Counted from the first letter of the stretch, positions 3,962-60,920 are shown. The stretch is DNA of 64,000 nucleotides from Phallusia mammillata (GCA_965637545.1 OZ281496.1:3224001-3288000), one strand, 5' to 3'. A program made the numbers and translations. Notes: generated by a model not told the origin, from the sequence alone.

Positions 3962-6900
3962 ATGGGTTCATGTTTTTCGAGAAACGTGACAGAAAACAAG
4001 AAAACATCAGGAAAAACAAACGAGTTTTGCCACAATGGTAAGTCTGTCATCGATCTGTGAGATTTTTCCGTCGTCCCAAAAATTAGCTGAGTAATGCCAG
4101 TTGTAACGCAGGTACCAGTTATATATAGTATATTTTATTGCAAGAATTCGTATGTGAGATCTATAAAAATTAGAGATTTTAAATGATGTGAGATTTTTTT
4201 ATGTCCCGTTTGCTGGACGAAATTGGCAATATTTTTTACCAGCTTACATGAACCGTTGTCAGTAAATACGATTATTCTCTTTTGCGTAGATACGATTAGA
4301 CGTCCACTCGCTTCAAAATTAGATTTAAAATCAAGCCTGCCAGGCGCCAACTATAGGCTTTCTTCCCACTAACACACAAAGTTCCAACAGTTTAATTGTA
4401 AACAAATCCCTTGCTGGCTTCAATTAGCAGAATGTAGTTACTTCAACGAGAACCGAATGGATAAACTGGCGGGCGGTTTTCAAGGGAAATATCAGGACAT
4501 AAACACAATAGAAAAAATGCCGGTCTAAACAATATAACACTCTTAACGAAGCTTTTGGACCAGGACTTTATAACAGTCATTCGTTGACGAGCTATCAAGT
4601 AACAAAGTACACTTTAGACCAGGCATATTGTTACAACAAAAGGTTTAACAATACAAGAAACTATTTGGAGGCATAATGTTAACAAAGATACCCAAGCAAA
4701 TAAAACAACACTTTCCAAAACAAAACAACTTGGTCACGAATTACAGGCAGGCTTTTTGTGCACAGCAATAAGAAACAGGTTACATACGATTTAACGACAT
4801 AGTTTACTAATTTTCCTGAAAAACAAACGACATTAGTTTCCTAGACACACGAAACGAACTACCGACGTTTTCAACAAACTTGTCGATGCGCGAAATTATC
4901 CAAATGATAAGGCGCTGTTTATACCTACATTTACAATTTGGGGAGACAGTAGACAAAACAGTCATTTGTAACAAATATAATATTATAGTTGGTCACAGTA
5001 CGCCTTCAATAGGCCTGGCGTACTGTGATTTATATCTGCGTGCGCCGTGATCGCTGGTCTGCATAGACGCTTCAGGGCTGATCCCAGTAATGAATTCATG
5101 TTCATCTTAACTGATTATAGTTGGTATTGCCATTTTTTACATGGTCAGATACATTCAACGTCTAATGGTGTTAATGTGATTCCTTTTTGTACAATTTGTT
5201 ATTTTATTTTTATGTTTAATTAAAATGTGTTTTTCTTATGTTTGACAAATACGGTTAAGACCTGTTTTTGTTTAATTTAGTTAAGAAAAAAACGATAGGA
5301 ATAAATTTGAAGAAAGAAACAGGGTTTCCCCCAACACTTTCTACAATTCCTACACGTGAAAATGATGGTTATGACGTGAGTAGAGTGAAAAGAATGTTCA
5401 TGGTTTAGGCCCTCACATACTGGACCTTTAAAAATGATCCTGTCATCAATTCTTAAATAGAAATAACCATCAAAATACACATCTTGTTAGCACAATTTTA
5501 TTTGCTATAGGAATCTAAATTTGATTTTCAGTATATAACGTCCTCGCCATTATCAGGGGTTTCTAGTTTCAATTAATATTAGCAAAAAGTCTGACCCTCA
5601 TTGTTTTATTTTGGGTAAGGATGAGTCTCTTCCACCATCACAATCATCACAGAAACCTGTTTCGTATGTAAAATAATTAATTTGACGGAGTTTCATGTAG
5701 TATTCTTACATTGATCAACAAGTAAATCATCCACTTTAGCGTGAGTAAAATGGATAATAAATAAGGTGTGAAATCGAACATAATTAATATGATCCAAATA
5801 TAATTAACCAATAAAATACGAAATTGCGCAATTTTATAACATCTCTGTCATGCCAATTTTGTAGTGGACCACTAAATCAATCCGGCAAACCTAATGTTGA
5901 GAAACATATTCGACAAAATAACAGATAGCTGAAATTAAGTGGGCTTTGTATTTTGAATGTATGTTCATGTTCAACCAAATTAACCGTAAAAAAATCCCTA
6001 TTAAATTCTACAAAAACTCCTAAGAAGAAAACGTTGTAATAAATGCCCTAACGCCGTGACATGTTGTTTTCAGACGAGGGGTCAGCCACGTAGGAAGGTA
6101 AGTAAAAAATACATTCTGTTTTTAAACATGCAATACTGTTGAGAGAAAGTGTCAATTTTAAAGACGAATATGACAAAAAAATATGATTGGGACTAATAAC
6201 CTCCGGTAAATGTTTGTTGTGTAATTGGTGACCAGTTTTATATCTACTGAACGCTACAAACCAACAACAAACAAAAAGTTATAATAACTGCGTTAACAGG
6301 GCATTTTGTTCCTTTCAGGAGATAGAGTTGGAATCTGGAGTTGAGGTAAGTAAAAACATTACGTCCTGCGGTAAAAAAATGTATGTCTGTTGAGAGATAA
6401 CTTAAAATACGAGACGATTTTGCTTGCCTTTAATCTGCATTGCTTGCAACATCCTCTAATATTAACCATGCTAAAACTATGAAATAAAGACAACGGCATG
6501 CAGTCTCGAGAACAAAATGCTATAAACAAACGGTATTACGATTCAATGTTAATAAGATACAAATCGTAAAACAACTAATATTTAACTGAGTTTACCAACA
6601 ATATTTACGCTATACTTTAAAGCACAAATAAGTATAATAAACTGAAACAAGATATGTCTAAAATTTTATATGTAAGTGTGTCACAATCAATATATCAAAC
6701 TAGTAAACAGAAAACGATTTATTTGATTTCATCCTAGCATTCTCCAGTTATTTAATTATGACGCAGCATAGTTAAATTTGCTCTTAAAAGCGCTTGATAA
6801 AAAAGCTGTAAACATGCAAGCATCCTGGGTAAAACCTGCTACAAAATACCAAATGAAATGAAACCAATTTGTACCTTGCTTTTGTCTTTAGTACGGAGAC

Positions 6901-7428
6901 ATTGACAACATTATTTTCGTCACAAAGGTAAACATTGATAAATTATTTCGCTGAACTTTTGATTTCAAACTTTGGGAACGCCCTGTAACGAAAGTTGCAA
7001 CTCGAACATTCAATGATTTAATTTTGATTGGAGTAAATCTGATAAAATGACAAAAATTAAAAACAAGAAACACTAACTCGAAGCTTTTTGCACTTAATGC
7101 ACAATAAACAATAATAAGAATCAAAAAATCAACTCAATAAGTTTTCTTTAGTCTCTAAACTGGTCTCAATTGGAACAAAATCTTCCAATCAATCGACCAC
7201 CACAAAATCCAGGTAAGAAATTTTCGTTTTGAATTTTCTGTCTGTTCAGTTAAAACACACTTTGTTGTGTAACAAAACAAAACGCTCCATTTGTCAGCTC
7301 GAGTTGCATTTGACAATTTCGATCCCAATGGATACCCAGCAGAAGAAGCAGCACAAATGGATGGCGATGAGGGTCGAAATCCGGACAACCAGATGCAACC
7401 AGAACAAAATCAGCCTCATAACAACTAA
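3962..7428 (+). CDS. Orphan micro-exon gene, copy D1 (model ~137 aa, disordered, N-terminal MGSCFS)
   Basis: Model exons 3962-4037, 5281-5375, 6074-6097, 6319-6345, 7152-7212, 7298-7428 are all GT-AG with compatible phases (1,0,0,0,1). The last exon, ARVAFDNFDPNGYPAEEAAQMDGDEGRNPDNQMQPEQNQPHNN*, has four paralogs in the window. The last two exons are well supported; the first four are a model. Confidence 0.6.
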
Positions 7429-15291: not shown

Positions 15292-18200
15292 CTAAATAAC
15301 AAAGTGAAACTGCTTGTCGGAACCACGTGCTTGTTCACGTGAAGCTACATCTTCTTCGTGACGCTTCCCAACAATTTCGTCTCCATCGTTGTTCTCATCA
15401 AAATTGGCCGATGTTTTCTTCAAGCGATTGAAGTGCACTACTTGGGTTTTGCCGGTTTGATCAACAATCTTGTAGTTGACAGGTCCTTGCTTCTCTACTA
15501 TCTGAAAAGGACCTTTATAGGGCAGGTGAAACTTTCTACATTCGTCCGGCGCCACAACCGGGTTTTCCAACAAGACTGAATCGTTAACATTAAGGGTGTC
15601 ACTGCTTTGCTTACTGTTATATTGCTTCTCTATTTGCTTGCGCTGACACTGGAGCGTCTCGCGTGCCACTTCCCTGGCAAGTGCCAGCTGATCTCGGAGT
15701 CCTTCCAGATGGACCAATGGCGACTGCTGGTCATGCGGCGAAGGCTCATGTATCAGGTCAGCGGGTAGACGCAAAGGACATCCTGTAAGCAAGTAGTGGG
15801 GAGCGAAGCCTGTGCTTTCGTGCCGACTGGAATTGTATGATGCTACCACCACTGACAAGGCCTCATCCCAGTGCTTTCCATCATGTTGAACATAATTTCG
15901 TAGCATGTTTAAAATTGTTCGGTTATCCCTTTCTACTCCGCCATTTGCCGAAGGCCGGTACGGGGTACTTCGGGTTTTCTTGCAACCCATCGGGCGGGTT
16001 AGTTCCTGAAACAGTGCGCTTTCGAAATTACCGCCCTGATCAGAATGGACTACCTCGGGGACCCCGTGGACGGTAAACCAGCGATGAAACAGCAAATTGG
16101 CTGTTTCTGTCACTGTTTGGTGACGCATGGGCCAAGCCCGGACGTACTTTGTGAACAAATCGCACGCGACAAGGACATAATGGTAACCAGTCCTCGTCAA
16201 CGGAAAAGGGACCATCACGTCTATCTCAATCCGTTCTAAAGGCCGAGTCTCTTGAGAAGGGACTAAAGATGCGCGTAGTTTTGTACTTGGCTTCTTATTT
16301 GATGCACATTCGGCACAACGGCGACAAACCTGCTCGACATTGTGGCGCCATTTTGCCCAATAAAATCTTTCTGACACTTTACTAAGTGTTTTCGCAATGC
16401 CAAGATGGCCGCCTCCATGAGATTGAACGTGTAACGCAGCTAGAACAGTAGGGCGCATAGCAAAGGGAACCAACATACGCTCTGTTCTGCCGTCGAGTCT
16501 AACCGAGTCCTCATCTCGGAGGTACAATATGCCGTTCCGACTAAACACACTTCCGAAAAGCGACCAATAATGTCGAATCGTTGGAGACATTCGTTTCACG
16601 GTTTTAAACTTGGCCCGGACACCCCGATGCAACCAACTAGCAACTACCCTCAGGTCGGTATCAGCCCCTTGAGCTTCTCTAATTTCGTCGAAGCTACAGC
16701 CAAGAATAACGCGAAAATTCACATTACACACTTCCGACGCACCTCCCGCCTGCCGCACGGGATATGGAAAGTCCGGGTCACTTTCGGGCTCAAGTCTACT
16801 TAGAGCGTCTGCGTTCCCATGTTTTACTCCCGGTCTATGAACCAACTCAAAGTTGTTTTCGGCTAGGTGCTCGACCCAACGCGCGCATTGGCCGTAGAGC
16901 TCTCTAGATTTCCATAGCCATCGCAAAGAAGCGTGATCTGTGCGCAGAATAAAACTGTTACCCAGTAAATAACAGAGGTATAGTTTCGTAGCAAGGATCA
17001 CAGCCAACAATTCCTTGCGGGTGGTCGAATAATGCCGTTCAGCTTTACTCAGGCTCCTACTACCATACGCGATCACATGCTCTTTGCCTTCGATCTCTTG
17101 GTTTGGAAAGCAACATATTGCATAGTCAGAAGCATCAGTGTCTAATATAAAGGATCGCCTGAAGTCTGGGTACTGTAGGATTGGTGCGTTGGTCATTATA
17201 TGTTTAAGCACAGAGAAAGCACGTTGGCAACTCTCGTCCCAGTCAAAGTTCTTCCCCTTTTCAGTAATCCGGTGTAGCGGGGATGCGATCTGCGCATAAT
17301 TTTCGACAAATTTGCGATAATAGGATGTCAATCCCACGAATTGTCGAACGTGCTTAACAGTTGTGGGAATAGGCCAATTTGCAACAGCGCGAACTTTTTC
17401 GGGGTCGCACAGGATACCCGCCTTGGAAACAACATGGCCGAGAAAATTAACTTCGCTCTTGAAAAGGCAACACTTTGAAGGCTTCAAAGTTAACCCTGCG
17501 GACTCCAATCGTCTTAAGACCAAATCTACGCGGGCTAGATGTTCTTCAAATGTGCGCGCATTTTTAATATTATTACGTCGTCCAGGTATGCAAGAACTCC
17601 ATTCAACCCCATTAAGGACGATACGCATTAACCTTTGAAAGCTGGCAGCTGCATTGCATAAACCCATCGGCATTACATTAAACTCGAATAGACCCATGTG
17701 GCTAGCGAATGCTGTCTTTTCGCGAGATTTTGGGTCCATAGGAATTTGCCAATAACCTGATTTAAGGTCGAACGTGGAGAAATAAACGGAACCGGCCATC
17801 TCGTCTAAACTATCGTCTATACGCGGTATGGGATAACTGTTCTTTTTGGTGACGGCGTTAAGGTCACGATAATGGATACAAAATCTTAAGTCACCTAACT
17901 TTTTCTTCACAAGAACAATTGAACTGGACCAGGGAGACGTAGACGGACGGACTAAACCTTGTTTGCGCATTTCATCGATGATCTCTTCAACTTTGTGCTT
18001 GTGACGTTGCGGCATCCTCCTAGGAGCTTGGCGCACTGGTCGAGCATCTCCTGTGTCAATAAAATGCTGCGTAATACTAGTTTTGCCAAGATCAGTTGCG
18101 GATGTAGAAAAGGCGCGCGTATGTGCCGACAGAACTTCAAGCACTTTGCGCATTTGGTCTGCAGTCAATTCATCACTCATATTTACCCCGGAGACTATAT

Positions 18201-19503
18201 TTCGCCAATGTTCATCAACCTGGCCGTCCTCTGCTTTGTGTGTGACGCTGGAGTTTCGGAAGTCTGCAAACAGTCGTTACAACTACATTTAGCAACATTG
18301 GCACCTAATAATACACGAAATGCGGGGTTGTAACATTGTACGTGGCCAAAAGTATTTGTATCCTTAGCTAACTTTATGTATTTGTATCCTTAGCTAACAA
18401 CCTAAAATGTTCGCAGGTCATATTAGCAATCGTGCCGTTTGCAGCAACCAGGCCAAAATTAGTTGGACACGACTCTAGGTTCATATTACCAACGTTAGAA
18501 AGTTTTCGCCGCAAGTGTTCGGATAACAAAGATACAGTTGCCCCCGTGTCTACTAAAGCACATACCGGCACGTTTTCGGTCACAATCTCAATAAACCGCG
18601 GTAACACTTGCTTTCGGTGGACGGTCGGAGGGTCAGGGAGTTGTTTGGTAGTCGTCATGGCTTTTGTGGGGGCCAGTCTAGAGGTTGCTCTGAGCACAGA
18701 AGAATAATTAAGGTTTTGTTTATCAACCGGTTGCATAGGAACGCGTAAACAGCGCGTCGTTTTTTTACCACGGTAACACTGGTGTTGGAGATGACCGGAC
18801 TCTCCACAATTAAAACACCTCCGCTGGTTAAAGGGTCGGGAAGGGCGCACATCGGAACGATGTTGAGCCAACGCCAGCGACCGAACCTGTTGCTGCAGAT
18901 TCTCGCACTGGGTTTGCAAACTCGCAACAGTGCTTGTTAAATGTTCTGTGTTTTTGTGTAAACCCTGCTTCAGTTCATTCAGGGTAGTAATTACAGTATT
19001 GTCAAAATCGCGTTTGTCCTCTACAGACGTAGTGACTGTTGCGACAATTGCCGTGGGTTGTTCCTTTAAACCAACTCGGAAGCGGCCCAAAAGTCACGCT
19101 TATGGTTTAATCAATTCGAAATATTAGCGGCAAGGTTTTGATCTAACAGTCCAGACAACAACACAGTGTACATTACTTTTCTCTTGATGTTTTCTTCCTT
19201 TTCCTCGGGGTACGCTTTGTTTCCCAGCTCCTTGATTGCACGCACAAATTCTCGGGGCGTTTCGCGAGGCATCTCCCGACGTGTAATCAATCGATGGCGC
19301 AGTTTATGCAAGTAAGCGCCGCCGGTACTGTTCTTTAGAGCTCGCTCGATAATAACTGAGTAATCCAGGTTGTATACGGAACGGTCCTTGCCTTGTATTC
19401 TCCAGCGGAGCTCGTCATCAATAGTAGACAGGACACTAGGTTTACCTCGCCACTGTAACTTAACTGGGCTAATAATACCATTTATTATGCGAACATAAAA
19501 CAA
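15292..19503 (-). mobile_element. Decayed Ty3/Gypsy retrotransposon internal region (gag, zinc knuckle, protease, RT, RNase H, integrase)
   Basis: 19111-19503 is gag-like. 18374-19090 contains CFNCGESGHLQHQC and LVDTGAT. 15292-18180 contains RT (SPWSSSIVLVKKK, DLKSGYWQ, FNVMPMGL), RNase H (LDTDAS, TDHASL) and integrase (H-H-C-C, SDQG, NGGVER) in Gypsy order. No LTR pair was found. Confidence 0.92.
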
Positions 19504-20736: not shown

Positions 20737-21520
20737 TCAATGGAATTTGTCTTTATCGTGTGTCGTTATGTGACTTTTCAAACTCCCACTTGCGGTGAAG
20801 CATTTTTACCAAACATCACATCGATAAGTTTTTTCTTTGGTGTGTGTCACCATGTGCCTTTTCAAATTTCCACCTTGCTTGAAGCATTTTTCACAAACAC
20901 AACATCGATGAGGTTTTTCTTTGGTGTGCGTCAACATGTGCATTTTCAAGTGATCACGTCGGTTAAATCTTTTTTCACAAACACCACATTGATGCGGTTT
21001 TTCTTTGGTGTGTGTCAACATGTGTGTTTTTACATTTCCACTTGTGTTAAATCTTTTTTCACAAACACCACATCGATGCGGTTTTTCTTTGGTGTGTGTC
21101 AACATGTGTATTTTTAGGTTTCCACCTTGGTTAAATCTTTTTTCACAAATATCACATCGATAAGGTTTTCGATTGCTGTGAGTCAACATGTGCGTTTTTA
21201 AAACTTCAACCCGACTGAATCTTTTTTCACAAACTTCACATCGATAAGGTTTCTCTTTGGTGTGTGTCAACATGTGTCTTTTCAAATTTCCACTTTCGCT
21301 GAAGCGTTTTTCGCAAACAATGCAGTGATGAGGTTTTTCTTTGGTGTGTGTCAACATGTGCCTTTTCAAACTTCCACCTTGCTTGAAGCATTTTTCACAA
21401 ACATAACATCGATGAGGTTTTTCTTTGCTGTGCGTCAACATGTGCATTTTCAAGTGATCAAATTTCCACTTATTTCAAATATTTTGCACAAACATCACAT
21501 TTATATAGTTTTTGTTTAGT
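20737..21520 (-). pseudogene. C2H2 zinc-finger tandem array, decayed at both ends
   Basis: Seven intact 28-aa fingers with TKEKP linkers lie in 20806-21453. The flanking fingers carry stops (CAKYLK* upstream; CDVW*KCF downstream). No effector domain is visible. Confidence 0.8.
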
Positions 21521-27656: not shown

Positions 27657-27925
27657 TTAGTTGTTTAGGGGCAGGTTTCGTTCTGGTTGCACATGGTTGT
27701 CCGGGTTTCGTTCTTCACCATCTATTTGTACTGGTTCCTCTGCTGGAGGTCCATTAGGATCGAAAACATCAAATGCAAATGGGACTAAAACATTAATCAT
27801 ATATTGCAAAATGTTTGAAATGAGTTTTAGTTACGTTGAAGACAATCATAACCTAAATTTTCCTCACCTTGATTTACACGTGGTAGAATGTGTCTATTGT
27901 CTTGATGCTGAAACCTATTCAAATC
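27657..27925 (-). CDS. Orphan micro-exon gene, copy D2 (last two exons)
   Basis: Exons 27868-27925 (DLNRFQHQDNRHILPRVNQ) and 27657-27784 (VPFAFDVFDPNGPPAEEPVQIDGEERNPDNHVQPERNLPLNN*), joined by a phase-1 intron as in D1. Confidence 0.7.
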
Positions 27926-28840: not shown

Positions 28841-29040
28841 NNNNNNNNNNNNNNNNNNNNNNNNNNNNNNNNNNNNNNNNNNNNNNNNNNNNNNNNNNNN
28901 NNNNNNNNNNNNNNNNNNNNNNNNNNNNNNNNNNNNNNNNNNNNNNNNNNNNNNNNNNNNNNNNNNNNNNNNNNNNNNNNNNNNNNNNNNNNNNNNNNNN
29001 NNNNNNNNNNNNNNNNNNNNNNNNNNNNNNNNNNNNNNNN
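28841..29040. other. Assembly gap (200 N)
   Basis: Run of exactly 200 N. The true size is unknown. Confidence 1.
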
Positions 29041-37796: not shown

Positions 37797-37849
37797 GTAT
37801 GTAACTGAAATATGACTAAGTATTGCTCATCCAGCAGTTTTATTGTAAA

Positions 37850-37899
37850 CAATCGACGTTTCGACGTCCTATACAAGACGCCTTCATCAGGATAATGAC
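37850..37899 (-). ncRNA. Minimal type I hammerhead ribozyme (family 3), inverted copy
   Basis: Exact reverse complement of 38231-38280. Confidence 0.8.
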
Positions 37900-38230
37900 A
37901 TAACTTGCAGGACAAATTTCTTTTAAAGCGACAAAATGCAAACCACACACATGTAAAACAGCGATAACAAGATCACGCGGCTGCAAACTCGCACCACCGT
38001 AGCGATAAAACAAGCTCAGTGGTGTAAAAGCGACCGATAATTTATCGGCATTAGAACATCTGTTTTAACGTTCATTGTGTTGGCGCGTGAATGGATGTTC
38101 CAAGACTCTAGGAAACTTCGCTTGTGAAAATCAGTTTCCTTCACCAACACTTGAGCAGCAGAAAAGTTAATGCTGTGATGGTGAGTGGTTGCATTTTGTC
38201 GCTTTAAAAGAAATTTGTCCTGCAAGTTAT

Positions 38231-38280
38231 GTCATTATCCTGATGAAGGCGTCTTGTATAGGACGTCGAAACGTCGATTG
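38231..38280 (+). ncRNA. Minimal type I hammerhead ribozyme (family 3), 5' pLTR
   Basis: CTGATGA 38240-38246, stem II GGCGTCTT-GTAT-AGGACGTC, GAAA 38268-38271, palindromic ACGT, predicted cleavage after GTC at 38275. Confidence 0.82.
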
Positions 38281-38323
38281 TTTACAATAAAACTGCTGGA
38301 TGAGCAATACTTAGTCATACATT

Positions 38324-40714
38324 ATGCCTGGCAGCAATAGCTTATTTCATGAATTTAAAGGTCTGTATGGACCCAGCGTCCTTTCGCAGTTGCGGAAATA
38401 CGTTGATCTAAGACGTAGCATTGTGAGACACAAGATGCACTTATTTTTCAACCATAGATGCCTTAGTGACAATGTGTTGCCTCGGTCGCTTCGGTTCAGA
38501 TCGCCTCATAATTCGGCCGCGGGTAAAAAGATAATGTGGAAATGCGGAATGGCCTTCATTCGACTGCGCATAGGCCTTTCTCACCATCGGATAAGGGAAT
38601 GCTCTGAGCTCTCAGAAGAACTTTTGCTCAGATTAGCCGCAATTCTTTCACACCATCACATGTGTCGCTTTGAACTGTATGTTAAATCGGGTAACGAAGC
38701 CCTTCAACGCCAACTTACGATTAACACGGAACGTCATCTCTGTTCGATTGTCCCAAAACGCCAGGAAGCCGTAAATGCAACCGGACAGCTTCAGAAGAAA
38801 AATTGGGTCGTTAATCTGTCCAGCTATCAGCCGAACGAAGTGGAGCTAAAGGTCCTGCAACTAGGAACCAACTTTGCAGTGGCACCAAGAACAGTTCCAA
38901 AGGCAAGTATGCTGGCCTGTGTTGAAAAGGGTATTTATTCTTTGCCGTTGCATGTCAAAAATCTAATACAAAGCAAGCTTGTTAATTGCATTAAAAGTCA
39001 CAGGGGCAATCCTTGTAATCTTACGACATCCGAGCGTCGTGCAGTCACAGATCTAAAAGCCAATGACGACATTACCATTTTACCAGCAGACAAAGGTAAT
39101 AGTACCGTTATTTTGGACCGCAAGGTTTATGAAGACAAAATCCACGAGCTTTTGCATGATTCAAGCACGTACAAGAAACTGCCACGTGACCCGACCCGAA
39201 GAACGGAACAAGTTCTTAACAAGTTTGTTGGTGTTTTGCACAAGGAGAAGAACTGTATTTCAGATGCGATGTTCCATCACTTGCACAGCACAGATGGTTC
39301 TGCTCCAAGGTTATATGGATTGCCGAAAGTCCACAAGAAGAATGTACCTCTTCGTCCAATCGTGTCGTTCATCGGAAGCCCCACTTACAACCTAGCCAAG
39401 TATTTGGCTCGAATTTTAGCGCCGTTGATCGGAAACACGGAATTTACCGTCAGAAATTCTGCAGAGTTTGTAAAATCTTTGAATGCGCAACAATCATTGA
39501 GTGAAGACGAAACGTTGGTTTCATTTGATGTTACTTCACTGTTTACCAACGTACCAATCGACCTAGCATTGGAAATAACCAAGTCACGGTTACTCGATGA
39601 TTACAGCTTTAAAGACAGGACCACATGGACACATGAAGACATACATAGAGGTCTGGAGATTTGCTTGCAACAAACTTACTTCAGATTCAGAGGTTCCTTT
39701 TACAAGCAAATGTATGGCACGGCCATGGGCTCTCCTGTGTCAGTGGCCGTTGCCAACATGGTCATGGAGTCTGTGGAGGAACGCGCCTTGCAAACTTTTG
39801 ACAAACCACCACGATTTTGGCGACGATATGTAGATGATACATTCTGTATCATTCATAAACACCGGGTAACAGAGTTTCTACGACATTTAAACAATGTGCA
39901 ACGAGGAATTGCGTTCACTATGGAATTGGAAAGCAAGAACCGGCTTCCTTTCCTAGATGTGGAAATTTTGAAAGCGGCGGATGGTAAACTTTCCACGCGT
40001 GTGTACCACAAGCCGACCAGTACCATGCGCTATTTACACTTCACATCCCATCATCCTTTGTACCAGAAAAGGGCTGTTGTCAAAGCACTTAAAGACCAGG
40101 CCAGACGCTTGACGACAGACCCAGCATTGCTTCAGGCGGAGTTGCACAGGGTAAATGAGGCCCTGCGGTTAAATGGCTACCCGAACTGGATTCTCCGTGA
40201 TCACAAAAAGATTTCACGGAAAGAAATCCAGTACAAAGAACGTGCCTTCGTCACCTTACCTTACATACCAAGGTTAACAGACATAATCCGTCGTATGTTG
40301 ACCGATTTCGGAGTATCGGTTGGGATCAAACCAGCAAACACCCTACGCCAGATGCTGTCGCACCCAAAAGATCCTCTAGATGCTACTGCAACTAGGGGTG
40401 TGGTGTATGCTATACCGTGCGGGGAGTGTGACGAAATATACATCGGTGAGACTGGTAGAAGTCTAAATACGCGCCGGAAGGAGCACGAAAGGGATGTGGG
40501 CAAGAAGGATGCGAAGAAATCAGCGTTGGCAAACCATGCAACCACTCACCATCACAGCATTAACTTTTCTGCTGCTCAAGTGTTGGTGAAGGAAACTGAT
40601 TTTCACAAGCGAAGTTTCCTAGAGTCTTGGAACATCCATTCACGCGCCAACACAATGAACGTTAAAACAGATGTTCTAATGCCGATAAATTATCGGTCGC
40701 TTTTACACCACTGA
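38324..40714 (+). CDS. PLE polyprotein: reverse transcriptase plus C-terminal GIY-YIG endonuclease (796 aa, Penelope/Poseidon-like)
   Basis: LYGLPKVHK, PLRPIVS, SFDVTSLFTNVP, GTAMGSP, RYVDDTF, FLDV and GVVYAIPCGECDEIYIGETGR..RRKEH in one uninterrupted frame. Confidence 0.95.
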   Translation: MPGSNSLFHEFKGLYGPSVLSQLRKYVDLRRSIVRHKMHLFFNHRCLSDNVLPRSLRFRSPHNSAAGKKIMWKCGMAFIRLRIGLSHHRIRECSELSEELLLRLAAILSHHHMCRFELYVKSGNEALQRQLTINTERHLCSIVPKRQEAVNATGQLQKKNWVVNLSSYQPNEVELKVLQLGTNFAVAPRTVPKASMLACVEKGIYSLPLHVKNLIQSKLVNCIKSHRGNPCNLTTSERRAVTDLKANDDITILPADKGNSTVILDRKVYEDKIHELLHDSSTYKKLPRDPTRRTEQVLNKFVGVLHKEKNCISDAMFHHLHSTDGSAPRLYGLPKVHKKNVPLRPIVSFIGSPTYNLAKYLARILAPLIGNTEFTVRNSAEFVKSLNAQQSLSEDETLVSFDVTSLFTNVPIDLALEITKSRLLDDYSFKDRTTWTHEDIHRGLEICLQQTYFRFRGSFYKQMYGTAMGSPVSVAVANMVMESVEERALQTFDKPPRFWRRYVDDTFCIIHKHRVTEFLRHLNNVQRGIAFTMELESKNRLPFLDVEILKAADGKLSTRVYHKPTSTMRYLHFTSHHPLYQKRAVVKALKDQARRLTTDPALLQAELHRVNEALRLNGYPNWILRDHKKISRKEIQYKERAFVTLPYIPRLTDIIRRMLTDFGVSVGIKPANTLRQMLSHPKDPLDATATRGVVYAIPCGECDEIYIGETGRSLNTRRKEHERDVGKKDAKKSALANHATTHHHSINFSAAQVLVKETDFHKRSFLESWNIHSRANTMNVKTDVLMPINYRSLLHH

Positions 40715-40830
40715 GCTTGTTTTATCGCTACGGTGGTGCGAGTTTGCAGCCGCGTGATCTTGTTATCGCTGTTTTACATGTGTGTGGTTTGCATTTTGTC
40801 GCTTTAAAAGAAATTTGTCCTGCAAGTTAT

Positions 40831-40880
40831 GTCATTATCCTGATGAAGGCGTCTTGTATAGGACGTCGAAACGTCGATTG
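40831..40880 (+). ncRNA. Minimal type I hammerhead ribozyme (family 3), 3' pLTR
   Basis: Identical to 38231-38280. Confidence 0.82.
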
Positions 40881-42481
40881 TTTACAATAAAACTGCTGGA
40901 TGAGCAATACTTTTTTAAACAATATCCAGCATTTCTTCTTTTAATGCAATCTGAAGAACAAATGCATCATTGTGCACTGTATCGCGTGACTTGCTATCAA
41001 AAACCAGAGACAATATTTATTTTTACACAAATAAATGCTATTTTTGTTTTCAATTTTGTCATCGAACGTTTTTTATTTGCTGTAGATCATTTGCATGTAT
41101 GTCTGGTCATCTGTACTTTCGGGTGATGTTTAACCGCATAATATTCGTTCCGTACAACCTTTTTCATGTGTCATTTTGGGTTAAATAGGAACGCAAATGT
41201 ACAAAGTCGTTTGTAAATTTTTGTAGTCAGCCAGGCTTGTTTAAACTGCTTGAGGCAAAAGTGTAATCAAGAGTTTGTAACAACATCTTTTATTATGTTG
41301 CACTTGAACCCGCAAAGAATCGAATAAATTATTGCCCTTTTTGTTTTGCTCTTTTAAGGTGAGCGCACTGCCATATAACGTATTGGAATGTTTCCTTCTG
41401 CATCTACAGCTGTGCCACATGTCAGCGGTTATTTTTAAACCTGCATTTGCTGTATATTTTGGTAAAAAAAAACAGAAGAAAATGTTTTAGCCCAGACGAA
41501 TCTGAATTAAATCAATTTCTAGTATTATAAATATTATTGCACTAAAAAGATTAATTTGCAAGCCCACTTGGATGATCAAAACATGTTAAAGCAATATTCT
41601 ACCTGATTAGGATAATATTGTATTATCCAGCAGTAATATTTTATACAGCCATTGCAAAGTATTTTGCAGACATAAGGGTGGGATATACAAATTAAAAATT
41701 GCCATGTTCAAAATGGCATTGCTTTCAGGTTGTAAATATTTTCTACATTTACTTTTCATTTGTACTTATTATGCAATGATTCTTGGCTGAGCAAAAACAA
41801 GAATGGTTGAGCTTTAAGTTTTTATGTTTGGTAATTTATCAACCTTTGTTTCTACGGAATTTTTTATCCATGTTGATTCATATTTGTCTTTAGGTGCAGG
41901 ATTAAAAACAAGCACTCCGTGTTCAACAATCAACAAAGTCTGTGCATCTGGAATGAAATTAATTAGCGTCGCAATCAATCAAGTGTTTACACCAAGACGT
42001 CATGGTGGCGGGTGGCATGGAAAGCATGTCAAATGCTCCATTTGATGCCACGACTGCCACCGGCGTATGGTGGCGTAAAAATGATCGACCTTATTGTTCA
42101 TGATGGCTTGACTGATGCTTACGGGAAATTTCACATGGGTATATGTGGATAGAATACTGCAAAAAACATTCAATATCTCGTCAAGAGCAAATGCATATGC
42201 CATTGAGTCATATACAAGAAGTGCAAAGGCTACTGAAGATGGGCAGTTTAAAGATGAAATTGTTGATGTTGTTATTTGTAGCGTCTCACTCACGCTTTGC
42301 GGGATTATACCAGATTTATTATGTTGCTGTCCAATACGCAGCACACCATCAGCACACGCTAGGTAGAATAACCGGCACATTATAAAACACTACATTATTG
42401 AAGGTAAATTGTAAAGTATATTTTACAAATATTGGATAAAACTTCCTGTACAATTTGATTGCATATGAAACATGTTTGATA

Positions 42482-48837: not shown

Positions 48838-51800
48838 ATGATGTGGTTATTGTTTCTATTGTTTTTCGTCGGATTTGTTGAAGGTGAATGTCCGGGTGAG
48901 GATCTCAGGCTGGCTCCACGACCTTATACAAGTAGGAAATCAATTTATTTTAAAAACGTCAAGGTTAGGCTTTTATATCGGTATTTGAACAAAAACTGAA
49001 ATCTATAATGGGAAAAAAACGACACCATTTATACAATGAAAATAAATACACGTGTTTTTCATCAATTTGTAAAACAGAAATATAAATGAATGTATTCATT
49101 TCCATTTCTGCTTTATTTCTTATTGAAATAGACTTCCTTTGACTACTATTTATTTGAAGCATATTTTATTCACAGAACCGAAAAATCTTTCAGAGTGCGA
49201 GGAACCGTATCGTGGTTCCAACTGCACCTGCCCTTCTTCAATGTTCGAATGTGCTTGTCACAAGTTTGGTCGGTGTGGGGACAAACCAAGGTGCGTTGAA
49301 ATGATGTTTGTACACAACTGGGGCAACGAATGCGGTGATTGGAGTGATGAGTTTAGCGATTATTGTCTAGAAGGCAGGTTTCAGTGTGACTGCATCAACA
49401 CAACTTGTAAAGGTGTAATTGGGTGTGGAAAATATTGGGTAAAGCATTGTAATGGAAACACGGAATGTATAGATGGCAGTGATGAAGTTAATTGCACTTG
49501 TCCAGCTCATAAGTTTGAATGTGATTGTTACAAAACAAACAAGTGCACAAATGGCCGTGGTTGCATTGAAATAGACGACACTTGCGATGGAAGAAATGAC
49601 TGTGGAGATTGGAGTGATGAAGTTAATTGCACTTGCCCAGCTGATACCTTTGAATGCCCCTGTTACAAAACAAGGAACTGCACAACTGCAAAGGGTGGTT
49701 GCATAAAAAACAAATGGCAATGCAATGGGTGGAATGATTGTGGGGATTGGAGTGATGAAATTAATTGCACTTGTTCAGCTGATATGTTTGAATGCAATTG
49801 TTATAAAACAAGCAGCTGCTCGAGAGATGATGGTTGCATAAACAAATCCTGGCAATGCAATTGGTGGAATGATTGTGGAGATTGGAGTGATGAAGCAAAT
49901 TGCACCTGTCCAGCTAATCGTTTTGAATGTGATTGTTACAAAACAAAGAACTGTACAACTCGACATGGTTGCATCTACAAAAAATATCAATGTGATGGAG
50001 TAAATGACTGTGGCGACTTGAGTGATGAAGTAAATTGCACTTGTCCAGCTCATAAGTTCCAATGTGCATGTGTTGGCACGAAACAATGCATTGTAACAAA
50101 GGGAAGTTGTATTGACCGATCTTTGTTATGTGATGGAAATGGTGACTGTTTTGATGGTAGTGATGAGACACATTACACATGTAACTGCTCTGGAGCTCAC
50201 GCAAAATGTCCGTATGATCCTGGCAACAAACGTTACCCATCTAAAGTCAGATGCATAGATTTGCGCTGGATTGGTGATGGATTTAAGGATTGTTTTGATG
50301 GAAGTGACGAACTGTGTTCAATCACAAACTTTACATGTCAATCTTGCACAATGTTTGTCACAACTTGTAAGGGTGAGCAGCTTGTCAGGTATCGTGTACA
50401 TTCTCCAGTCCCATCAGAGTGCAACACGGTAATCCAACCGTCGTGTGCTGATGACATAAATCGTTGTGAAAACAAGAATGTGATTTGTGTCTCATCAAAC
50501 TGCAACGAAAGGAAACATAAATATTGTAAGAAGGTTTTTATTTGTGAAAATGCAAATATAATAGCGGGAAGCGATTTTTGTGACAGAGTTAGTAGTTGCA
50601 GTGACAACAGTGACGAAATCATGTCGGGATTTGGATTTAAATGCTCTGGATCATCGAGACAAGGTGTTTGTGTATTACCACAAGTCAACGTTTACGACTC
50701 AGTGGCTCAATGTTCTGATAAATCTGATCTTTGTTTTGTCAACGGAAAGTTTAGATGTTTTCAGTGCTTGGATAAAAAGTTACTCATATCACCCAAGCAA
50801 GTTTGTGATGGTATTTTGGATTGTTTTGATATGTCTGATGAGTGTTTATGTTTGAATCAAAGTTTGTGTGAAGATATAAGGGGTTCTTGTCCGTCAAATC
50901 AGATGCATTGTCAAAATAAATCTGTTTGTTCGGATCAAAGTGGGAAGTTGTGCAATTCAAGTGTGCAATGTGTTGATCAAATCAACACGAAATACTGCTC
51001 GGCTCCTAATCACTTAAAACAAACCCAGTGTTTGCCAGAAGACACCAAACACCTTAAACTTGACGAAGTATTTAGGTGTGCAAAAACTGACAACCCACCA
51101 TTAAGGTATTGGTTTCGGGATCGCATCGATTCGGGCGATGATTTTAAAGTTCTGTTGAACTCAATATGTGATGGAATAGTAGACAGTTTTTGGGGGTTTG
51201 GGGAAGCGAATTGCCCAAACAGATTTTATTGTTTATCCAAAGAAAAAATCAGCATAGATATCTCACAGGCTTGCGACGGAAAAATTGATTGCGACGATGG
51301 TTCAGATGAATTTCCTGAACTTTGCAACAAAACCCAGTTTTATTGTAAAAGCAAGGATAGGGTTTCCATTGACCGAAAAACACTTTGTGATGGAATTATC
51401 GATTGTGACAATGAATCTGATGAAAGCAAATGCCGTTGCGAAAAAGTAAGGTTTTATTGCACAAATAAACAACCTGTTTCGATTGAAATAAAACTGGTGC
51501 AGAATGGAATTCGCGATTGTTCGGACGGAAGTGACGAATGTGCAAACTTGGCTGGAGACGCATTTGCAGATGTCAACGAAATGATCGCCAATCCAATATA
51601 CCGGGTAATTTTTTGGATAACAGCTGTGTTAGCCTTGGGAGGAAATTTGTTTGTGTTTATTGCAACTGCTCACAGCTTGTGGAATGCAGACAGAAACAAA
51701 CATGTTTTTATTAACACCAGTATTTTTATTCTTAACCTTTGTTGCTCAGATTTCCTCATGGGAATTTATCTGCTTGCAGTTATAGTTCAAGCCAGGCAAT

Positions 51801-52750
51801 TTTCTGGCTCGTATTGTCTATTTGACAAGGAATGGCGATCAAGTAGATTGTGTTCAGGACTTGGAGCACTTGCAATTATTTCTTCAGAGGCATCAGCGTT
51901 TACAATGACAGCCATGACAACGTTTCGCCTTGCATCAGCTTTCAAACCATTTACAATCCGAAACATGGGTGTTCTTAGAGTTTTACTTGGTGAATTGATT
52001 TGCTGGATTTTGGCTACGGTTTTGGCAATTATTCCCTTACTTCAAGTCAATTCAGAATATTTTACAACTGATGTCTGGTTTCCAAACAACATTTTTGGAA
52101 ATGATTTTGTTTCCAGAGAAAACATATCACTTCTTGCTGAAAGAATTACTGGTGTAGAACCGGTGGGTTGGAACGATGTGAAACAAACTATAACAATGGC
52201 ATTTCCTCGCAACCCAATCAAAGGAGAGTTTGGATATTATGGGGAAACAAGCGTTTGTATGCCACGTTTATTTGCCACAACCAATGAGTTTGCTTGGGAA
52301 TATTCAACTTTCCTCATCACCATCAACTTCCTTATGTTCATCTACATGGTGATTGCATACGTTCTTTTCTACAAACAAAGCAACCGCATGAAAGAAGCCA
52401 GAAGCAATGATGTCAGTTCCAAGATGCAGAAAAGAATCTCGAGGTTGATTTTGACCGACTTTTGTTGCTGGATTCCAATTTGTGTTATGGGATATTTGAG
52501 TGTTGGAGGAATCAGGATGCCACCAGATGCTTATGTGTTGAGTGCTTGTCTGTTGCTTCCAATCAACAGCGCTCTCAATCCATTGCTTTACTCAAAAGCA
52601 ATTGAAGATCAACTTACTAGGGCCAAAAAATATGTGAGACAAAATGTATCTTCTATCGGGGCAATTACAAGTTGCCCAACGGAATTGACTGTGACCTACA
52701 ATGCTGGTGCAGTACAAGAAGGCGACAGAGTGATTGAAGTTGTTGGATAA
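48838..52750 (+). CDS. Multi-LDLa class A GPCR (GRL101/RXFP-like 7TM) lacking leucine-rich repeats
   Basis: A signal-peptide exon from 48838 (MMWLLFLLFFVGFVE, phase-1 donor at 48884 or 48896) splices to one 3.6-kb exon, 49176-52750. It contains many CD..DC.D.SDE modules, then a 7TM with GGN, NLCCSDFLMG, CMP, TDFCCWIP and PINSALNPLLY. Confidence 0.92.
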
Positions 52751-56105: not shown

Positions 56106-57288
56106 TTATGTACCAACAGGTCGGTTTTGTTCTGGTTGTAGATGGTTGTTTGGGTTTCTATTCCTATTACCATCCATTTCAGTTGGTTCCTGTGCTGGTG
56201 GTCCGAAAGGTGGTGGCGGTATGACTGATTCCTCTTTATATGCACACTTGTCAAAAATATAAACAAAACTTATTCCTTTTTTAACATTTTTTGCCAAATA
56301 ATCAAATATTTAGTTTGCTAGAACCCGTATTTGTTACGAATTGCAAATAAATTTAAAGTTTAATCATAAACATTACTGCCAAAGTATTGGTGTATAAAAA
56401 ATATATCGTTCCGTGTTCTACAGGTTGATTAAAAACATGCACTGATGATGACAACAGAGATTGTCGAAACGTCTGAACGATGTATTCTATATACACCACT
56501 ACCTTGGCAGTAATGTTTATGATTAAACTACTAGTCCGTGTATAGTGTTCCTAAATGTATAGTTTAATGATGAAAATAACAGCCCAAATAAACGTAAAAA
56601 AGCGACATGCTTTTTACAATAAGTGTGTATAAACAGGTGTAACTAAAGTGGCCTTCATATCGCTAATGATGGCATGAGCATTTACCGAAACGTTTGAACA
56701 CTTAAGCATGTCGTTTTTATGTTTGTTAAGGCCGATATAAATTTTCACAATATAATTTATAAACAGATTTCTATATAGTGTTCCAAAATTCATAGCTATA
56801 TTTGAAATTATGAAATGCTTATGAATAAAATAGTTCTTGCCTGTACATTATTACCTTGGACATGTATCTCAATGTATTACCACACATGAAAGTTGTACCC
56901 AAGGGGGATGCGTTGTTTGGTGGCCGTAGTGCTGGTATTGATGGTAGATGTGACTGCGAAGGTAGTGGATGTGGTGGTGGTATTGGTTGCAAATGTGATA
57001 GTGGTGATGGTTGTAGATGTGGTTGCGATGATGATGGTGCTGGTTGCACATGTAGTGGAGAAGTTCGATTCTGAAAAACATTATATTTTAAACATTTTGA
57101 TTCTAAACAATGAAGCAAAACTAATATATATGGCAGCGCTGACAAACTGCAATGTTTGTATTAATCTTTTTTAAAGATCTAAAAACATCAACATAAACAC
57201 ATGTTACCACTTAGCAGAATAAACACATGTTTCATTTCGCATTAGTCCTACTTACTTCATTTGTATGTAGTGAATGCTCCATTTCTTC
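56106..57288 (-). CDS. Orphan micro-exon gene, copy D3 (divergent, with a Pro/Gln/His-rich exon)
   Basis: Exons 57256-57288 (EEMEHSLHTNE), 56855-57070 and 56106-56246 (..FGPPAQEPTEMDGNRNRNPNNHLQPEQNRPVGT*), all phase 0. Confidence 0.62.
56357..56550 (+). mobile_element. Hammerhead-bearing remnant with 55-bp inverted arms (family 5)
   Basis: 56357-56411 is a diverged reverse complement of 56475-56529, and the two arms enclose a hammerhead core. Confidence 0.7.
56435..56483 (+). ncRNA. Minimal type I hammerhead ribozyme (family 5)
   Basis: CTGATGA 56442-56448, stem II GACAA-CAGAGA-TTGTC, GAAA 56466-56469, C GTC, stem I CA/TG plus distal ACAT/ATGT. Confidence 0.72.
56575..56790 (+). mobile_element. 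Second copy of the family 4 hammerhead remnant, degenerate, with a short inverted arm
   Basis: CTAATGA T GGCATGAGCATTTACC GAAA CGTT at 56663-56694. It aligns with 43091-43247, and 56575-56615 is an inverted copy of the downstream segment. Confidence 0.6.
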
Positions 57289-58727
57289 CTGTGACTTTGT
57301 TGTATTCAACAACTTCTTTTTCGATGAAACAAATCAGACAAAAATGTTTAGATTTTAAACAATTTGCTAGAAACTCACTCATGTAAACTATAACACAATA
57401 TAATTGTTTTTTTGAATAAATTTTGCATAGAAAACGTTTAAGTTTTGTTTTAGAACGATTCAAGCAAACCGGTAGGAAAAGTTCTGTTCGTTGTGTAAGA
57501 AAGTCCGCTGAAAAGTGAAAGAATGAATTTACTGCGCAATATGTATTGTTTCCCTAATACTTACGTTTACACAAAGTGACTTGTCAAGTCACTGATGATC
57601 AAACAGTCATATGTAGAATAAAAAAGGTGTTCAATTCTCAGGTAACATTTAAATACAATTGGAAGTGGTTTGAAAGTTTTTTCATCTTTGGCAAAAAAAG
57701 TCACATGTTTAATTATATATATCGTCCTCTTTTATCCAACTTCGAACACATTTACCCACTGTGTACAAAGGGTGTCATATTTGACTTTTATACTTGCTTT
57801 AGTATTACAAATGATTTGATTGTTAACTTCTAAACCTTGTTAAATATCTAAACCCCATGTTCATAACACTTAACACATTGTTCTACACTGGTCTTGTGCA
57901 AAAAATTTTCATGATGTCGTAACTTATTTATTGTTTTACACAACTTCGTAAATAGAGTTTTTAAAAGAACTTTAGAAACTTGAAGGGCCAGCAATTACAC
58001 AGGCAAAAGTCCGTGCCCTTCAAGTACGTCTGTATACATGTAATAGCTTTCAACATTACCAATATGAAATTTCATATAACTTCTCAGTTTATCCTGAACT
58101 TTTAAAACGCACATTTATTTTCTACCTGGTCTCTGTAGAACTGATAATTTGCACATATAGAAGTGTAGACAAAGTGCTGTAGAGGCTTTAACCACGAGAA
58201 ACATGCAGACGCACAAGAAACAAAATCAAAACATTGGCCACATCATGTCACACTTTGACGCGCAACTTCCAGGATGTGACGTAAAACCTTCTCAAAATGA
58301 AGTGTAAATATGGTATCGTACTTTCAACAGTCGCTCTTATCGGATAAGCTGTACATTTTGCATAGCTTGATTACTTAAATTTTGCGATTTTTATTTCAGA
58401 CGGAAAGTTTAAAAGCCACGCATCATGATATTAATAGCTACTTGTTGGAAGAAACATATATTGATTGAATATTATATAGATACATGCATTATATCTAAAA
58501 ATCATACACTTCTACGTGCAATGAGAGTTTAATCTCCACATCCCCTAGCCATATTTAAGACAGAAGCTTTTGCAAATAGTGACAGAAGCTTTTCCAAATA
58601 GTAATTAGGTTAATACAATAAGGTGTATTACAAATTCATCCATCTGCATTGGAAAGGACCAACAATATTCTAAACCTTTTTTAAATAAACGCAAAAGCAT
58701 AATTTTTAATGTACATTTAGGCAAGCA

Positions 58728-59287
58728 TTAGTTGGTACGAGGCTGGTTTTGTTCTGTTTGCAACTGGTTGTCCTGGTTTCGAACCTCACCGTCGTCTACT
58801 TGGGGTGGTTCTTCTGCTGGGGTTCCATTAGGGTCGAAGTTGTCAAATGCAATTCGGGCTGAAATGATTGTTTGGTAACATCAAAAATAGTGTCCAACGA
58901 CGACAGCAATAGTTTTTCAACATAATCTACTTACATTGGTTTACAGGAAGCGGTGGTGGAGATGGAATGTTTGAATTAAATTCTCTCATCTTAATCTTGT
59001 TGAAAATCTGTACAGAATAATTTGAGCTTGACTTCGTGTCATAGATTTGTGACAGTTTTTAGTTAGTTTGTTTGCACCTGCTAAATGTTAAAATTATTAA
59101 CTGAGATTCAAAAACACCGTTCAAACAAAGTTAATAGAATAGAGAATATTGAAGTAATGCGATCTTCATCTATGATTAAAAATTGCTTTAACTTTTTTTT
59201 TGTATATTTTTATATTTTTACTAAATACTGTTTTTTAATTATTATTCCTACTTGGTTTGCTGGCTGAAATGGTGGACAAGGCAGAAC
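58728..59287 (-). CDS. Orphan micro-exon gene, copy D4 (last three exons)
   Basis: Exons 59252-59287 (VLPCPPFQPANQ), 58935-59007 (IFNKIKMREFNSNIPSPPPLPVNQ) and 58728-58858 (SRIAFDNFDPNGTPAEEPPQVDDGEVRNQDNQLQTEQNQPRTN*). The last exon is 131 nt, as in D1. Confidence 0.72.
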
Positions 59288-60285
59288 CTATAAAACAAAA
59301 AAGCAACAAAATTTCAAAAGAGTAGGTATATTACAATGACGTCTATCAGCCATAATTTACAGCTTTCTGAAAGCCCCTAAAATGTATACAGGGCACCTAT
59401 AATCCTGTTCAACATAGGTGCATACATTGTAGGTATTTGCTGATTTGTTCAACAATCGAGCACCAATTTAGACCCACATCAAATCTTTTTCTATAATCCA
59501 AACTAAAACCCGAACATAATAAAGGAATACAACAATTAAATTGATGTGCCGTTGTTGGAATTATATAAATGATTTTGGAAGTCGAGATGGCAAAAAGATA
59601 ATAGAGTTAATACAATTATAGCAAACAAATCAATACATGAAAAGTAACTCTGCGAAAACTAATAATATAGAAACTTTTAATATACAGGTGTGCTAAGTTC
59701 CGGTATGTGGCACACTCAAACATTTTAAAAGCAGTTTGTGTAAAAAGTGCTGAGAGTTAAGATCACTACGTTTAGTCTATGGTTCCATAATAATAATAAC
59801 AATAAAATCAAGTCAAAAACTCAGTTTTTTGTTAAATTTAGTCCCCAAATCTATTCTAGTCTTACTGTAAATTTAAATAACTGCGCTCTTTACGTCATTT
59901 GTCGGTATTTGTTAGTAGCTTTGAAATGAGCTTTTGGATTTTCTACCTATTTTTTTGTAATGATTAAACAATCATCAGTTTTGAAATCCAATTTTAAACT
60001 TTATTGATTTTTCTAACTGTGCTGAATACCACTGTCTTTGAAATGCCACATTTGCACTTTTACAAATAAGACATATTGTACAATACCCTGCATTACTACG
60101 ATATTTTTTGTATCATATTGGTCATTACGACAATTTTATTTATTTATTTTTAATTATGTAGTTTTTGTGCACCTGCGACGACTTTTGCAATCCAATTCGC
60201 GACGACTTTTGCAAATCCAAGTATTTCATAGTAGTGTAAAAGACTATTCCCCTGGGGGTTTGAACAGACAACGAAATAAAAATAA

Positions 60286-60920
60286 CTATCTAATCTGCGT
60301 GGGTGTATGTTGTGTATCCTTTGGGATTTGATCCTCATTGCCATTCGATTGCTCCGGTGGGTCTGGGATTCTGTTTGGGTCAAAGTTGTCAAATGCGATT
60401 CGAGCTGATAAAAGTGACACATTACATACACAAACTTTTGCAATGTTTATCGTTTTTTAACCTTGGTTTGGAGGTGGTCGGTGAAAGGTAATGTCATATT
60501 CTTCGCATGTAATCTTGTTAGAAACCTGAAAAATAAAAAGTTAAGTTGTTTCTTCAATGACAACAGTGTGTTGTGTATTTAGCGAAAAATAAAAACAAAA
60601 ATACGTCACCTAATAAATACCCCTCACCTTCAGTGGTTGGAACAATATTTTGGAAGCATTTTTAATGCAAACTATAAAACTATTCATTTACACATATAAC
60701 TTTCGACAATATTTCTTTAGAAATCAAGTTATTACTGTCGGTACCATTTTGCAACTGCAGAATGTACTGCCGATATCGCCAAAATGTTGTTAATTATAAC
60801 CTAATTCAATTAAATGGGAATTAAATTTTGCAAAATATTTGCACTCACCGGTATTTTGGTATTTTGCTGTTCATCCCACACCGAACTTTGTGGTTCTTTT
60901 TCCGACGTGTTGAATGACAT
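60286..60920 (-). CDS. Orphan micro-exon gene, copy D5
   Basis: Exons 60462-60525 (VSNKITCEEYDITFHRPPPNQ) and 60286-60404 (ARIAFDNFDPNRIPDPPEQSNGNEDQIPKDTQHTPTQIR*). A candidate ATG exon, 60849-60920 (MSFNTSEKEPQSSVWDEQQNTKIP, GTGAGT donor), is less certain. Confidence 0.65.

Follow-up and report, generated by a model that had tools for sequence, protein, structure and literature searches.

Five short, look-alike exons in a 64,000-nucleotide stretch of the Phallusia mammillata genome (GCA_965637545.1, OZ281496.1:3224001-3288000; here called the window, on contig C3) raise the question of whether they are the last exons of working genes, and of what the products of such genes might do. An earlier note had assigned them to five paralogs of an unrecognised family of small disordered proteins, hidden from open reading frame (ORF) finders by micro-exons. 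Gene models and splice sites were read from the genome sequence alone. With a probability of about 0.6, the five genes (g1 to g5) would be members of a real, taxon-restricted, protein-coding ampliconic family of small disordered proteins, which would act through a docking motif.

The peptide claimed for the terminal exons was seen at all five intervals, with the translation corrected for frame (the exons are entered in phase 1). The terminal exon of g1 (7298-7428, plus strand) reads RVAFDNFDPNG... and continues into an acidic tail and a TAA stop; that of g2 (27657-27784, minus strand) reads PFAFDVFDPNG...; that of g4 (58728-58858, minus strand) RIAFDNFDPNG...; and that of g5 (60286-60404, minus strand) RIAFDNFDPNRIPDPPEQ..., with a variant tail. 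These four have (R/P)(V/I/F)AFD(N/V)FDPN in common, and g1, g2 and g4 go on as G-x-PAEE..DG.E.RNPDN..QPEQN.P; g5 is the exception, its tail deviating 3' of the motif (IPDPPEQSNGNEDQ..). In g3 (56106-56246, minus strand) the tail alone is kept, PPPPFGPPAQEP...RNPNNHLQPEQN; this motif-less exon reads ..IPPPPFGPPAQEP.. and then the usual tail, like the end of a penultimate exon fused to the body of a terminal one. The pattern ascribed to all five exons holds for the motif in g1, g2, g4 and g5, but g3 is without AFDNFDPN and the tail of g5 is different. An AG stands directly before each of the five exons and the frame is open up to the stop in each; the claim that all are open is borne out, with no internal stop in the corrected frame. 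Among the motif-bearing exons, the position of the acceptor relative to the motif is identical.

Most terminal exons are preceded, 57-91 nt upstream, by a penultimate exon of 19-24 codons that ends in ..PPxN(Q/P) plus one base (phase 1). Homology among the penultimate exons of different types can be recognised (..NRPPQNP, ..ILPPQNQ, ..NIPPPPPVNQ, ..FHRPPPNQ), and the Pro-rich exon with a phase-1 intron described earlier for four copies is indeed present in g1, g2, g4 and g5. It lies at 7152-7212 in g1 (plus strand, 61 nt, ending ..NRPPQNP plus one base, phase 1; paralogs differ by an in-frame 3-nt indel), at 27868-27925 in g2 (minus strand, 58 nt, ending ..ILPRVNQ plus one base; aligned with three paralogous loci), at 58935-59007 in g4 (minus strand, 73 nt, ending ..PSPPPLPVNQ plus one base), and at 60462-60525 in g5 (minus strand, 64 nt, ending ..HRPPPNQ plus one base).

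Full models with canonical AG/GT sites and consistent phases were obtained for g3 and g5. The three-exon model of g3 (57282-57256 / 57070-56855 / 56246-56106; 27 / 216 / 141 nt) is in frame and gives 127 aa; its first coding exon (57256-57282, minus strand, 27 nt) encodes MEHSLHTNE and ends in phase 0 at a gtaagt donor, and its second (56855-57070, minus strand) is rich in Pro, Gln, His and Ser and runs from phase 0 to phase 0. At 216 nt, this exon falls outside the 24-95 nt that had been given for upstream exons, a range that does not stand. The three-exon model of g5 (60920-60849 / 60525-60462 / 60404-60286; 72 / 64 / 119 nt), likewise in frame, gives 84 aa and starts with a 72-nt exon (60849-60920, minus strand, MSFNTSEKEP.., phase 0, gtgagt donor); CCAAT-like and TATA-like boxes are kept upstream of its ATG in paralogs, as judged by eye from the alignment. 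For g1, the first coding exon (3962-4037, plus strand, 76 nt, MGSCFSRN...) has a gtaagt donor in phase 1, and a candidate micro-exon of 36 nt (6892-6927, plus strand, phase 0 to phase 0) keeps AG/GT and an open frame in five paralogs, although these differ in length by 3-21 nt, always by a multiple of 3. A 36-nt exon of g4 (59252-59287, minus strand, VLPCPPFQPANQ, phase 0 to phase 0) shows an in-frame 3-nt indel among paralogs. Poly(A) signals 17-153 nt past each stop lend weak support, the background being 0.25 per 100 nt. Spliced retrocopies were sought as a proxy for germline expression; the long open frames found were intron read-through, and none was spliced. None of the claimed exons meets the assembly gap at 28841-29040, which is 916 nt from the closest exon placed (27868-27925); only 5' exons of g2 may lie past it.

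Comparison between subfamilies singles out the terminal exon. Across subfamilies only its ~141 nt align (23 of 24 loci), with the alignment beginning a few bases 5' of the acceptor and stopping a few bases 3' of the stop codon; where two copies are 80-85% identical in the exon, identity in the last intron and 3' flank is 0.61, versus 0.57-0.60 for shuffled sequence. Entropy at codon positions 1, 2 and 3 of the exon is 0.30, 0.26 and 0.47, respectively, the third position being the most variable. The NG86 method, applied to 22 unique sequences, gave 0.12 for nonsynonymous (dN) and 0.36 for synonymous (dS) divergence, a ratio of 0.34. Expressed as nonsynonymous over synonymous differences (pN/pS), the whole exon stands at 0.42 (25 unique sequences), the AFDNFDPNG codons at 0.24, the tail at 0.34, the x-PAEEPAQ segment at 0.93 and the first two codons at 1.6; the terminal exon of the g1 subfamily stands at 0.52, and the MGSCFS exon, within its subfamily, at 0.27. 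Between g5 and L048, the most distant member of its subfamily, exonic indels measure 3, 3 and 3 nt, and those of introns and flank 4, 18, 1, 10 and 16 nt. From these patterns, the terminal exon looks protein-coding. The AFDNFDPNG core, the basis of the motif proposed earlier, is the most constrained part by its pN/pS and is retained across acidic, basic and g5-type tails, and the fast evolution proposed outside the motif is seen in the middle exons (pN/pS ~1.1-1.2) and in the saturated flanks. A dN/dS near 1 with stops in most copies, named beforehand as the sign of a mistaken reading, is not what was found: the ratio is 0.34, and 140 of 150 genomic matches are stop-free.

Paralogs also exchange parts of this exon. 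Over the upstream kilobase, g4 and L034 are 98-99% identical; the value is 98% for 346 nt of upstream sequence, 99% for the penultimate exon with its intron and 100% for the 47 nt that open the terminal exon (up to codon 16), but it drops to 83% in the last 81 nt; the tail of L034 is 94% identical to that of L033, whose upstream region is only 73% identical. Further pairings of backbone and tail recur in the same way. Judging from these mosaics, short-tract gene conversion shuffles the final 81 nt of this exon between paralogs. Gene conversion would account for an exon dS (0.36) far below the divergence of the flanks, and part of the conservation of the exon is, by the same alignments, attributable to conversion and not to selection alone. 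Since conversion of tails inflates apparent conservation, the pairwise dN/dS values are only indicative.

The count of five paralogs proved far too low. When the g1 terminal exon was searched in six frames against the entire 240-Mb assembly, it gave at least 150 matches (the best 150 of 197 candidates), of which 149 lie within C3:2,928,607-5,178,693, a 2.25-Mb ampliconic region, and one at C3:10.31 Mb; a DNA-level search of the genome returned the same distribution. Nine of the ten matches with stops have TAG, which, in copies read, replaces CAG five codons ahead of the normal stop. A degenerate DNA pattern for FDNFDPNG, with one mismatch allowed, gave 104 genome matches against none in the reversed control, and the five look-alike exons are therefore beyond chance; all but four of these matches, which are on C2, fall in the C3 family region. 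Many family copies score identically, and identity between L001 and L002 is 96% over 3.1 kb. The one copy on C3 beyond 2.93-5.18 Mb (L051, C3:10309318-10309437, plus strand; LFAFRIFDPNGSLAEES.., open) has copies of a G-protein-coupled receptor (GPCR) with LDLa repeats ~20-70 kb away, and might be an ancestral or a dispersed locus.

A gene for such a receptor, intronless and relaxin-receptor-like, is found in the window at 49139-52750 (plus strand; Pfam LDLa x6 and 7tm_1), as a neighbour and not a member of the family. It has 16 copies of 91-100% identity inside C3:2.93-5.05 Mb, and those paired by coordinates (by eye) have two or three convergently oriented family genes at 3-6 kb downstream; more than 100 further copies lie outside the family-bearing region. 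The family thus shows what defines ampliconic families, namely many copies in large, highly similar segmental duplications together with gene conversion, and would comprise perhaps a dozen old paralog types, multiplied ~16-fold by segmental duplication. Genome-wide, the receptor search gave 527 candidates; the 100 copies scored are 58-100% identical over the seven-transmembrane (7TM) half and mostly open, and lie mainly on C3, C5, C6 and C1. Receptors of this kind, the LDLRR-GPCRs, are known in Ciona, with LDLa repeats on a relaxin-receptor-like 7TM domain without leucine-rich repeats (Kamesh et al. 2008, PMC2396169). The receptor in the window has the same layout; it differs in adjoining the small proteins, to which it has no kinship.

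The products are predicted to be small, roughly 80-130 aa, and in those of g3 and g5, P, N, Q, D and E are abundant and hydrophobic residues make up 19-25%. The disorder claimed for the terminal peptide is matched by the AlphaFold2 prediction, in which this peptide, with a 23-sequence alignment, has a predicted local distance difference test score (pLDDT) of 60, a predicted template modelling score (pTM) of 0.17 and no secondary structure. None of the identified first exons carries a signal peptide, all being hydrophilic (MGSCFSRNVTENKK.., MGKCISKQKCDD.., MSFNTSEKEP.., MEHSLHTNE). Two 5' exon types start with MGxCxS(K/R), as MGSCFSR in 16 copies and MGKCIS(K/R) in six; those MG exons that were paired by coordinates have a same-strand terminal exon downstream, at a distance of 2-7 kb for MGSCFS. 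A possible third type starts with MGCTST, and g5 (MSF..) and g3 (MEH..) are without an MG start. A start of the form MGxCxS is a consensus for N-myristoylation with adjacent palmitoylation; a Met-Gly start combined with a Cys close by and a small residue at position 6 occurs in the MGSCFSR and MGKCIS(K/R) subfamilies only. The intron after the MGKCIS exon (L050, L047, L048, L033) opens with a long (GTGAGTGG/GTGAGTGC)n microsatellite, which amounts to a run of tandem consensus splice donors and varies greatly in length among paralogs.

Tails fall into canonical acidic, TAG-truncated acidic, g5-type, basic (..QINRNRDRFRHNQLQRS..) and motif-less g3-type classes, and copies of the g3 type, though motif-less, stay open in many cases. 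The acidic tail proposed earlier describes the canonical class, but not the basic variant of about a dozen or more copies (counted by match pattern; read directly in five fetched loci). In these five loci, L052-L056 (e.g. C3:4679044-4679157), ARIAFDNFDPNGQPAEES is kept in the same frame as a basic tail (..NRNRDRFRHNQLQRSRNGRS..); compared with the canonical class, the tail charge is reversed through point changes. On the paralogs compared, the constant element is best described as (hydrophobic)-AFDNFDPNG-x-P.

Relatives outside the genome were sought in several ways. Pfam gave no match at E<=10 save one noise match, a length-limited, word-indexed protein search gave no candidate, and a 23-exon profile run against 1.84 billion cluster representatives gave two spurious repeat-protein matches only. 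Both of these (labelled by eye as a bacterial PKD-like repeat protein and a Cys-rich chitin-binding-like repeat protein) were rejected as homologues, as only the first 17-23 columns aligned, through repetition. A literature search did not find the motif string, and a general search on Phallusia gave no relevant result. The earlier remark that no domain is recognised is upheld by Pfam, the word search and the profile search, none of which yielded a true relative. Lineage specificity is supported by absence from the public protein sets searched, and the comparison extends as far as those sets. With no homologue among 1.84 billion public protein clusters, the family appears to be previously undescribed.

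A similar string, FDNFDSNG, whose DNA matches that of the family motif at 21 of 23 positions, is encoded at L061:1424-2321 (minus strand) and at L062-L064; these four loci are on C2 at 1.21, 2.71, 2.77 and 2.90 Mb. In L061 it stands ~40 residues past the end of a protein-kinase domain. It also occurs within a 56-codon linker exon with ~51 copies, mostly at C2:0.76-4.0 Mb, and comparison of the family profile with that of the linker exon aligned only 11 columns, with a probability of 62%. The string may be a shared linear motif or chance, with ~0.1-0.2 independent chance matches expected.

Several observations weigh against a functional coding family. The motif has been lost from the terminal exon of g3. 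Exons are not better kept than introns within subfamilies (g5 versus L048: exon 2, 77%; intron 1, 86%); the 6892 exon and the penultimate exon of g1 have pN/pS ~1.1-1.2, and exon 1 of g5 has 1.76, on few changes. A frameshift is present in 2 of ~46 sampled copies. Ab initio chaining did not determine the g1 exons between exon 1 and the 6892 exon, because subfamily introns are 80-90% identical and conserved AG..GT candidates are in surplus; first exons of g2 and g4, looked for by paralog alignment, were not found. The pairwise dN/dS values are drawn from non-independent, recombining paralogs, and gene conversion can hold frames open and lower apparent dS without function. Much of this would be expected if the exons were dead or dying gene pieces, carried along as passengers by a recent amplification of the LDLa-GPCR segment and alike owing to their youth and to homogenising gene conversion: many copies are near-identical segmental duplicates, conversion is demonstrable, upstream exons evolve at a roughly neutral rate and a few copies are frameshifted. 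This is the main rival, which we consider unlikely though worth serious attention. It is weakened by the old types: their flanks are at the shuffled baseline, yet their terminal exons remain 80-87% identical, and acceptor, frame, motif and stop position are unchanged. Moreover, the motif is at pN/pS 0.24, 140 of 150 matches are open with nine of ten stops being TAG (a near-terminal truncation in copies read), exon indels come in multiples of 3, and conversion alone fails to explain homology that is bounded exactly by exon borders.

Three further explanations change the nature of the element itself. Genes that stand in tandem arrays, evolve fast and combine small exons with segments rich in Pro and Gln and an acidic C-terminal piece would suit secreted small proteins or peptide precursors, of the kind of schistosome micro-exon genes (MEGs), secretory calcium-binding phosphoproteins (SCPP) or proline-rich secretory proteins, or antimicrobial peptide precursors with an anionic pro-piece. 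The resemblance to MEGs is real in that these are lineage-specific and clustered, defeat ORF finders by short exons and have rapidly evolving products; they have signal peptides, however, and symmetric exons that allow exon skipping, whereas the exons here measure 76, 36, 61, 58, 73, 64, 72, 27 and 216 nt, only some of these lengths being multiples of 3, it is the C-terminal exon that is conserved, and the identified first exons are hydrophilic, with no signal-peptide-like hydrophobic stretch. SCPP genes have all their introns in phase 0, but here four of the five genes in the window have a phase-1 last intron, and the profile search yielded no relatives; a secreted family is accordingly regarded as improbable. 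More improbable still is an exon carried or captured by a transposable element and multiplied by transposition. The copy number is high and the window holds Ty3/gypsy and other reverse transcriptase (RT) elements, but copies are limited to one 2.25-Mb region and one site at 10.3 Mb on the same contig, homology between types ends at exon borders with no common termini, and copy number tracks large segmental duplications that include the GPCR gene; the transposon origin that the earlier note had named as its undoing thus fails on distribution, exon-bounded homology and the lack of shared termini. Equally hard to credit is a non-coding RNA or regulatory DNA element in the conserved 141 nt. A dS of 0.36, lower than the divergence of the flanks, would speak for it, but this is explained by gene conversion; variability follows codon position, stop and acceptor positions are conserved, Rfam gave no match, and the RNA fold (z-score -0.4) is no better than that of shuffles.

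A coding ampliconic family has its closest counterparts in the vertebrate GAGE/PAGE/XAGE and mouse Sly/Slx genes, which are ampliconic multicopy families of small disordered proteins. In both cases, near-identical copies number in the tens to hundreds and sit in large segmental duplications of a single chromosome, a few small exons give short acidic disordered products, and evolution is fast, with gene conversion among the copies. The sequences are unrelated, however, and the ascidian family has no known sex chromosome or germline-restricted expression; its copies share the last two exons only, with varying 5' exons, and a GPCR is co-amplified. Small disordered proteins and adaptors that are dual-acylated and membrane-anchored, with MGC or MGxC starts as in Src-family kinases, G-alpha subunits and similar small anchors, offer a parallel for the two 5' types with MGxCxS(K/R) followed by a short hydrophilic disordered chain; they differ in that only some subfamilies have the MG start, no homology to such proteins exists and lipidation is a prediction. 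The RVxF pattern by which small disordered phosphatase regulators dock on protein phosphatase 1 is [RK]-x(0,1)-[VI]-{P}-[FW]. Many terminal exons begin with R-(V/I)-A-F followed by acidic residues and fit this loose pattern, but whole subfamilies carry LFAF, LFAL or PFAF, the first two codons are the least constrained (pN/pS 1.6), and the invariant FDP is not part of RVxF.

The mechanism that we propose for the coding family is as follows. Variable 5' exons (at least two and possibly three types, MGxCxS/MGC) would be joined to a Pro-rich penultimate exon and a conserved terminal exon, the latter encoding (hydrophobic)-A-F-D-N-F-D-P-N-G-x-P and then a charged tail that is usually acidic and sometimes basic or truncated. 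A segment of ~60-300 kb with the LDLa-GPCR would have been copied ~16 times in C3:2.93-5.18 Mb, multiplying about a dozen old paralog types. A short invariant peptide inside a disordered chain would be a docking motif, and the pattern of conservation suggests that this one would dock on a conserved cellular partner; the 5' exons may set the site of presentation (the inner face of the membrane for lipid-anchored forms, the cytosol for others), and the charged tail may tune binding. Purifying selection on the motif, together with short-tract conversion of tails, would explain why the terminal exon is alike across otherwise unalignable paralogs.

A bolder version, which we regard as a long shot, takes the proteins to be diversifying adaptors or decoys that present a short linear motif, some of them lipid-anchored, and that act with receptors or kinases amplified in the same genome. 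They might be intracellular partners of the co-amplified LDLa-GPCRs, or might compete for FDNFD(P/S)NG as found beyond the kinase domain (in at least one C2-clustered kinase copy) and in the ~51 linker exons. Conversion would then mix motif and tail variants into combinatorial diversity, as in innate recognition.

Other elements in the window are as follows. A Ty3/gypsy-type retrotransposon at 15292-19090 (minus strand) retains an intact pol ORF of 962 aa, which encodes RT, RNase H and integrase, and its upstream ORF has a zinc knuckle and a weak aspartyl-protease match; it is adjoined by a tandem C2H2 zinc-finger ORF at 20806-21453 (minus strand, 215 aa). Within 37811-40925, an RT-encoding ORF at 38324-40714 (Pfam RVT_1 only) has 137-nt direct repeats on either side (38189-38325 and 40789-40925), and perfect inverted copies occur as 377-nt arms (37818-38194 and 40536-40912); this layout is reminiscent of Penelope-like elements with pseudo-long terminal repeats.

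The coding reading, returning to the five exons, would have several consequences. Standard annotation may miss genes of this kind, as the searches of public protein sets turned up no member. Since the eggs of Phallusia are transparent and easily injected, tests of localisation and of partners would be straightforward. If expressed, the family would be among the largest tunicate orphan gene families, with at least 150 genes in 2.25 Mb. Its architecture, in which variable exons with a putative targeting role are joined to a constant exon with a putative docking role, is unusually clear, and would make it a tractable case for the birth and upkeep of short linear motifs as well as for the evolution of ampliconic regions away from sex chromosomes. 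Co-amplification with the receptor genes would, in addition, give a handle on the role of the orphan ascidian LDLa-GPCRs.

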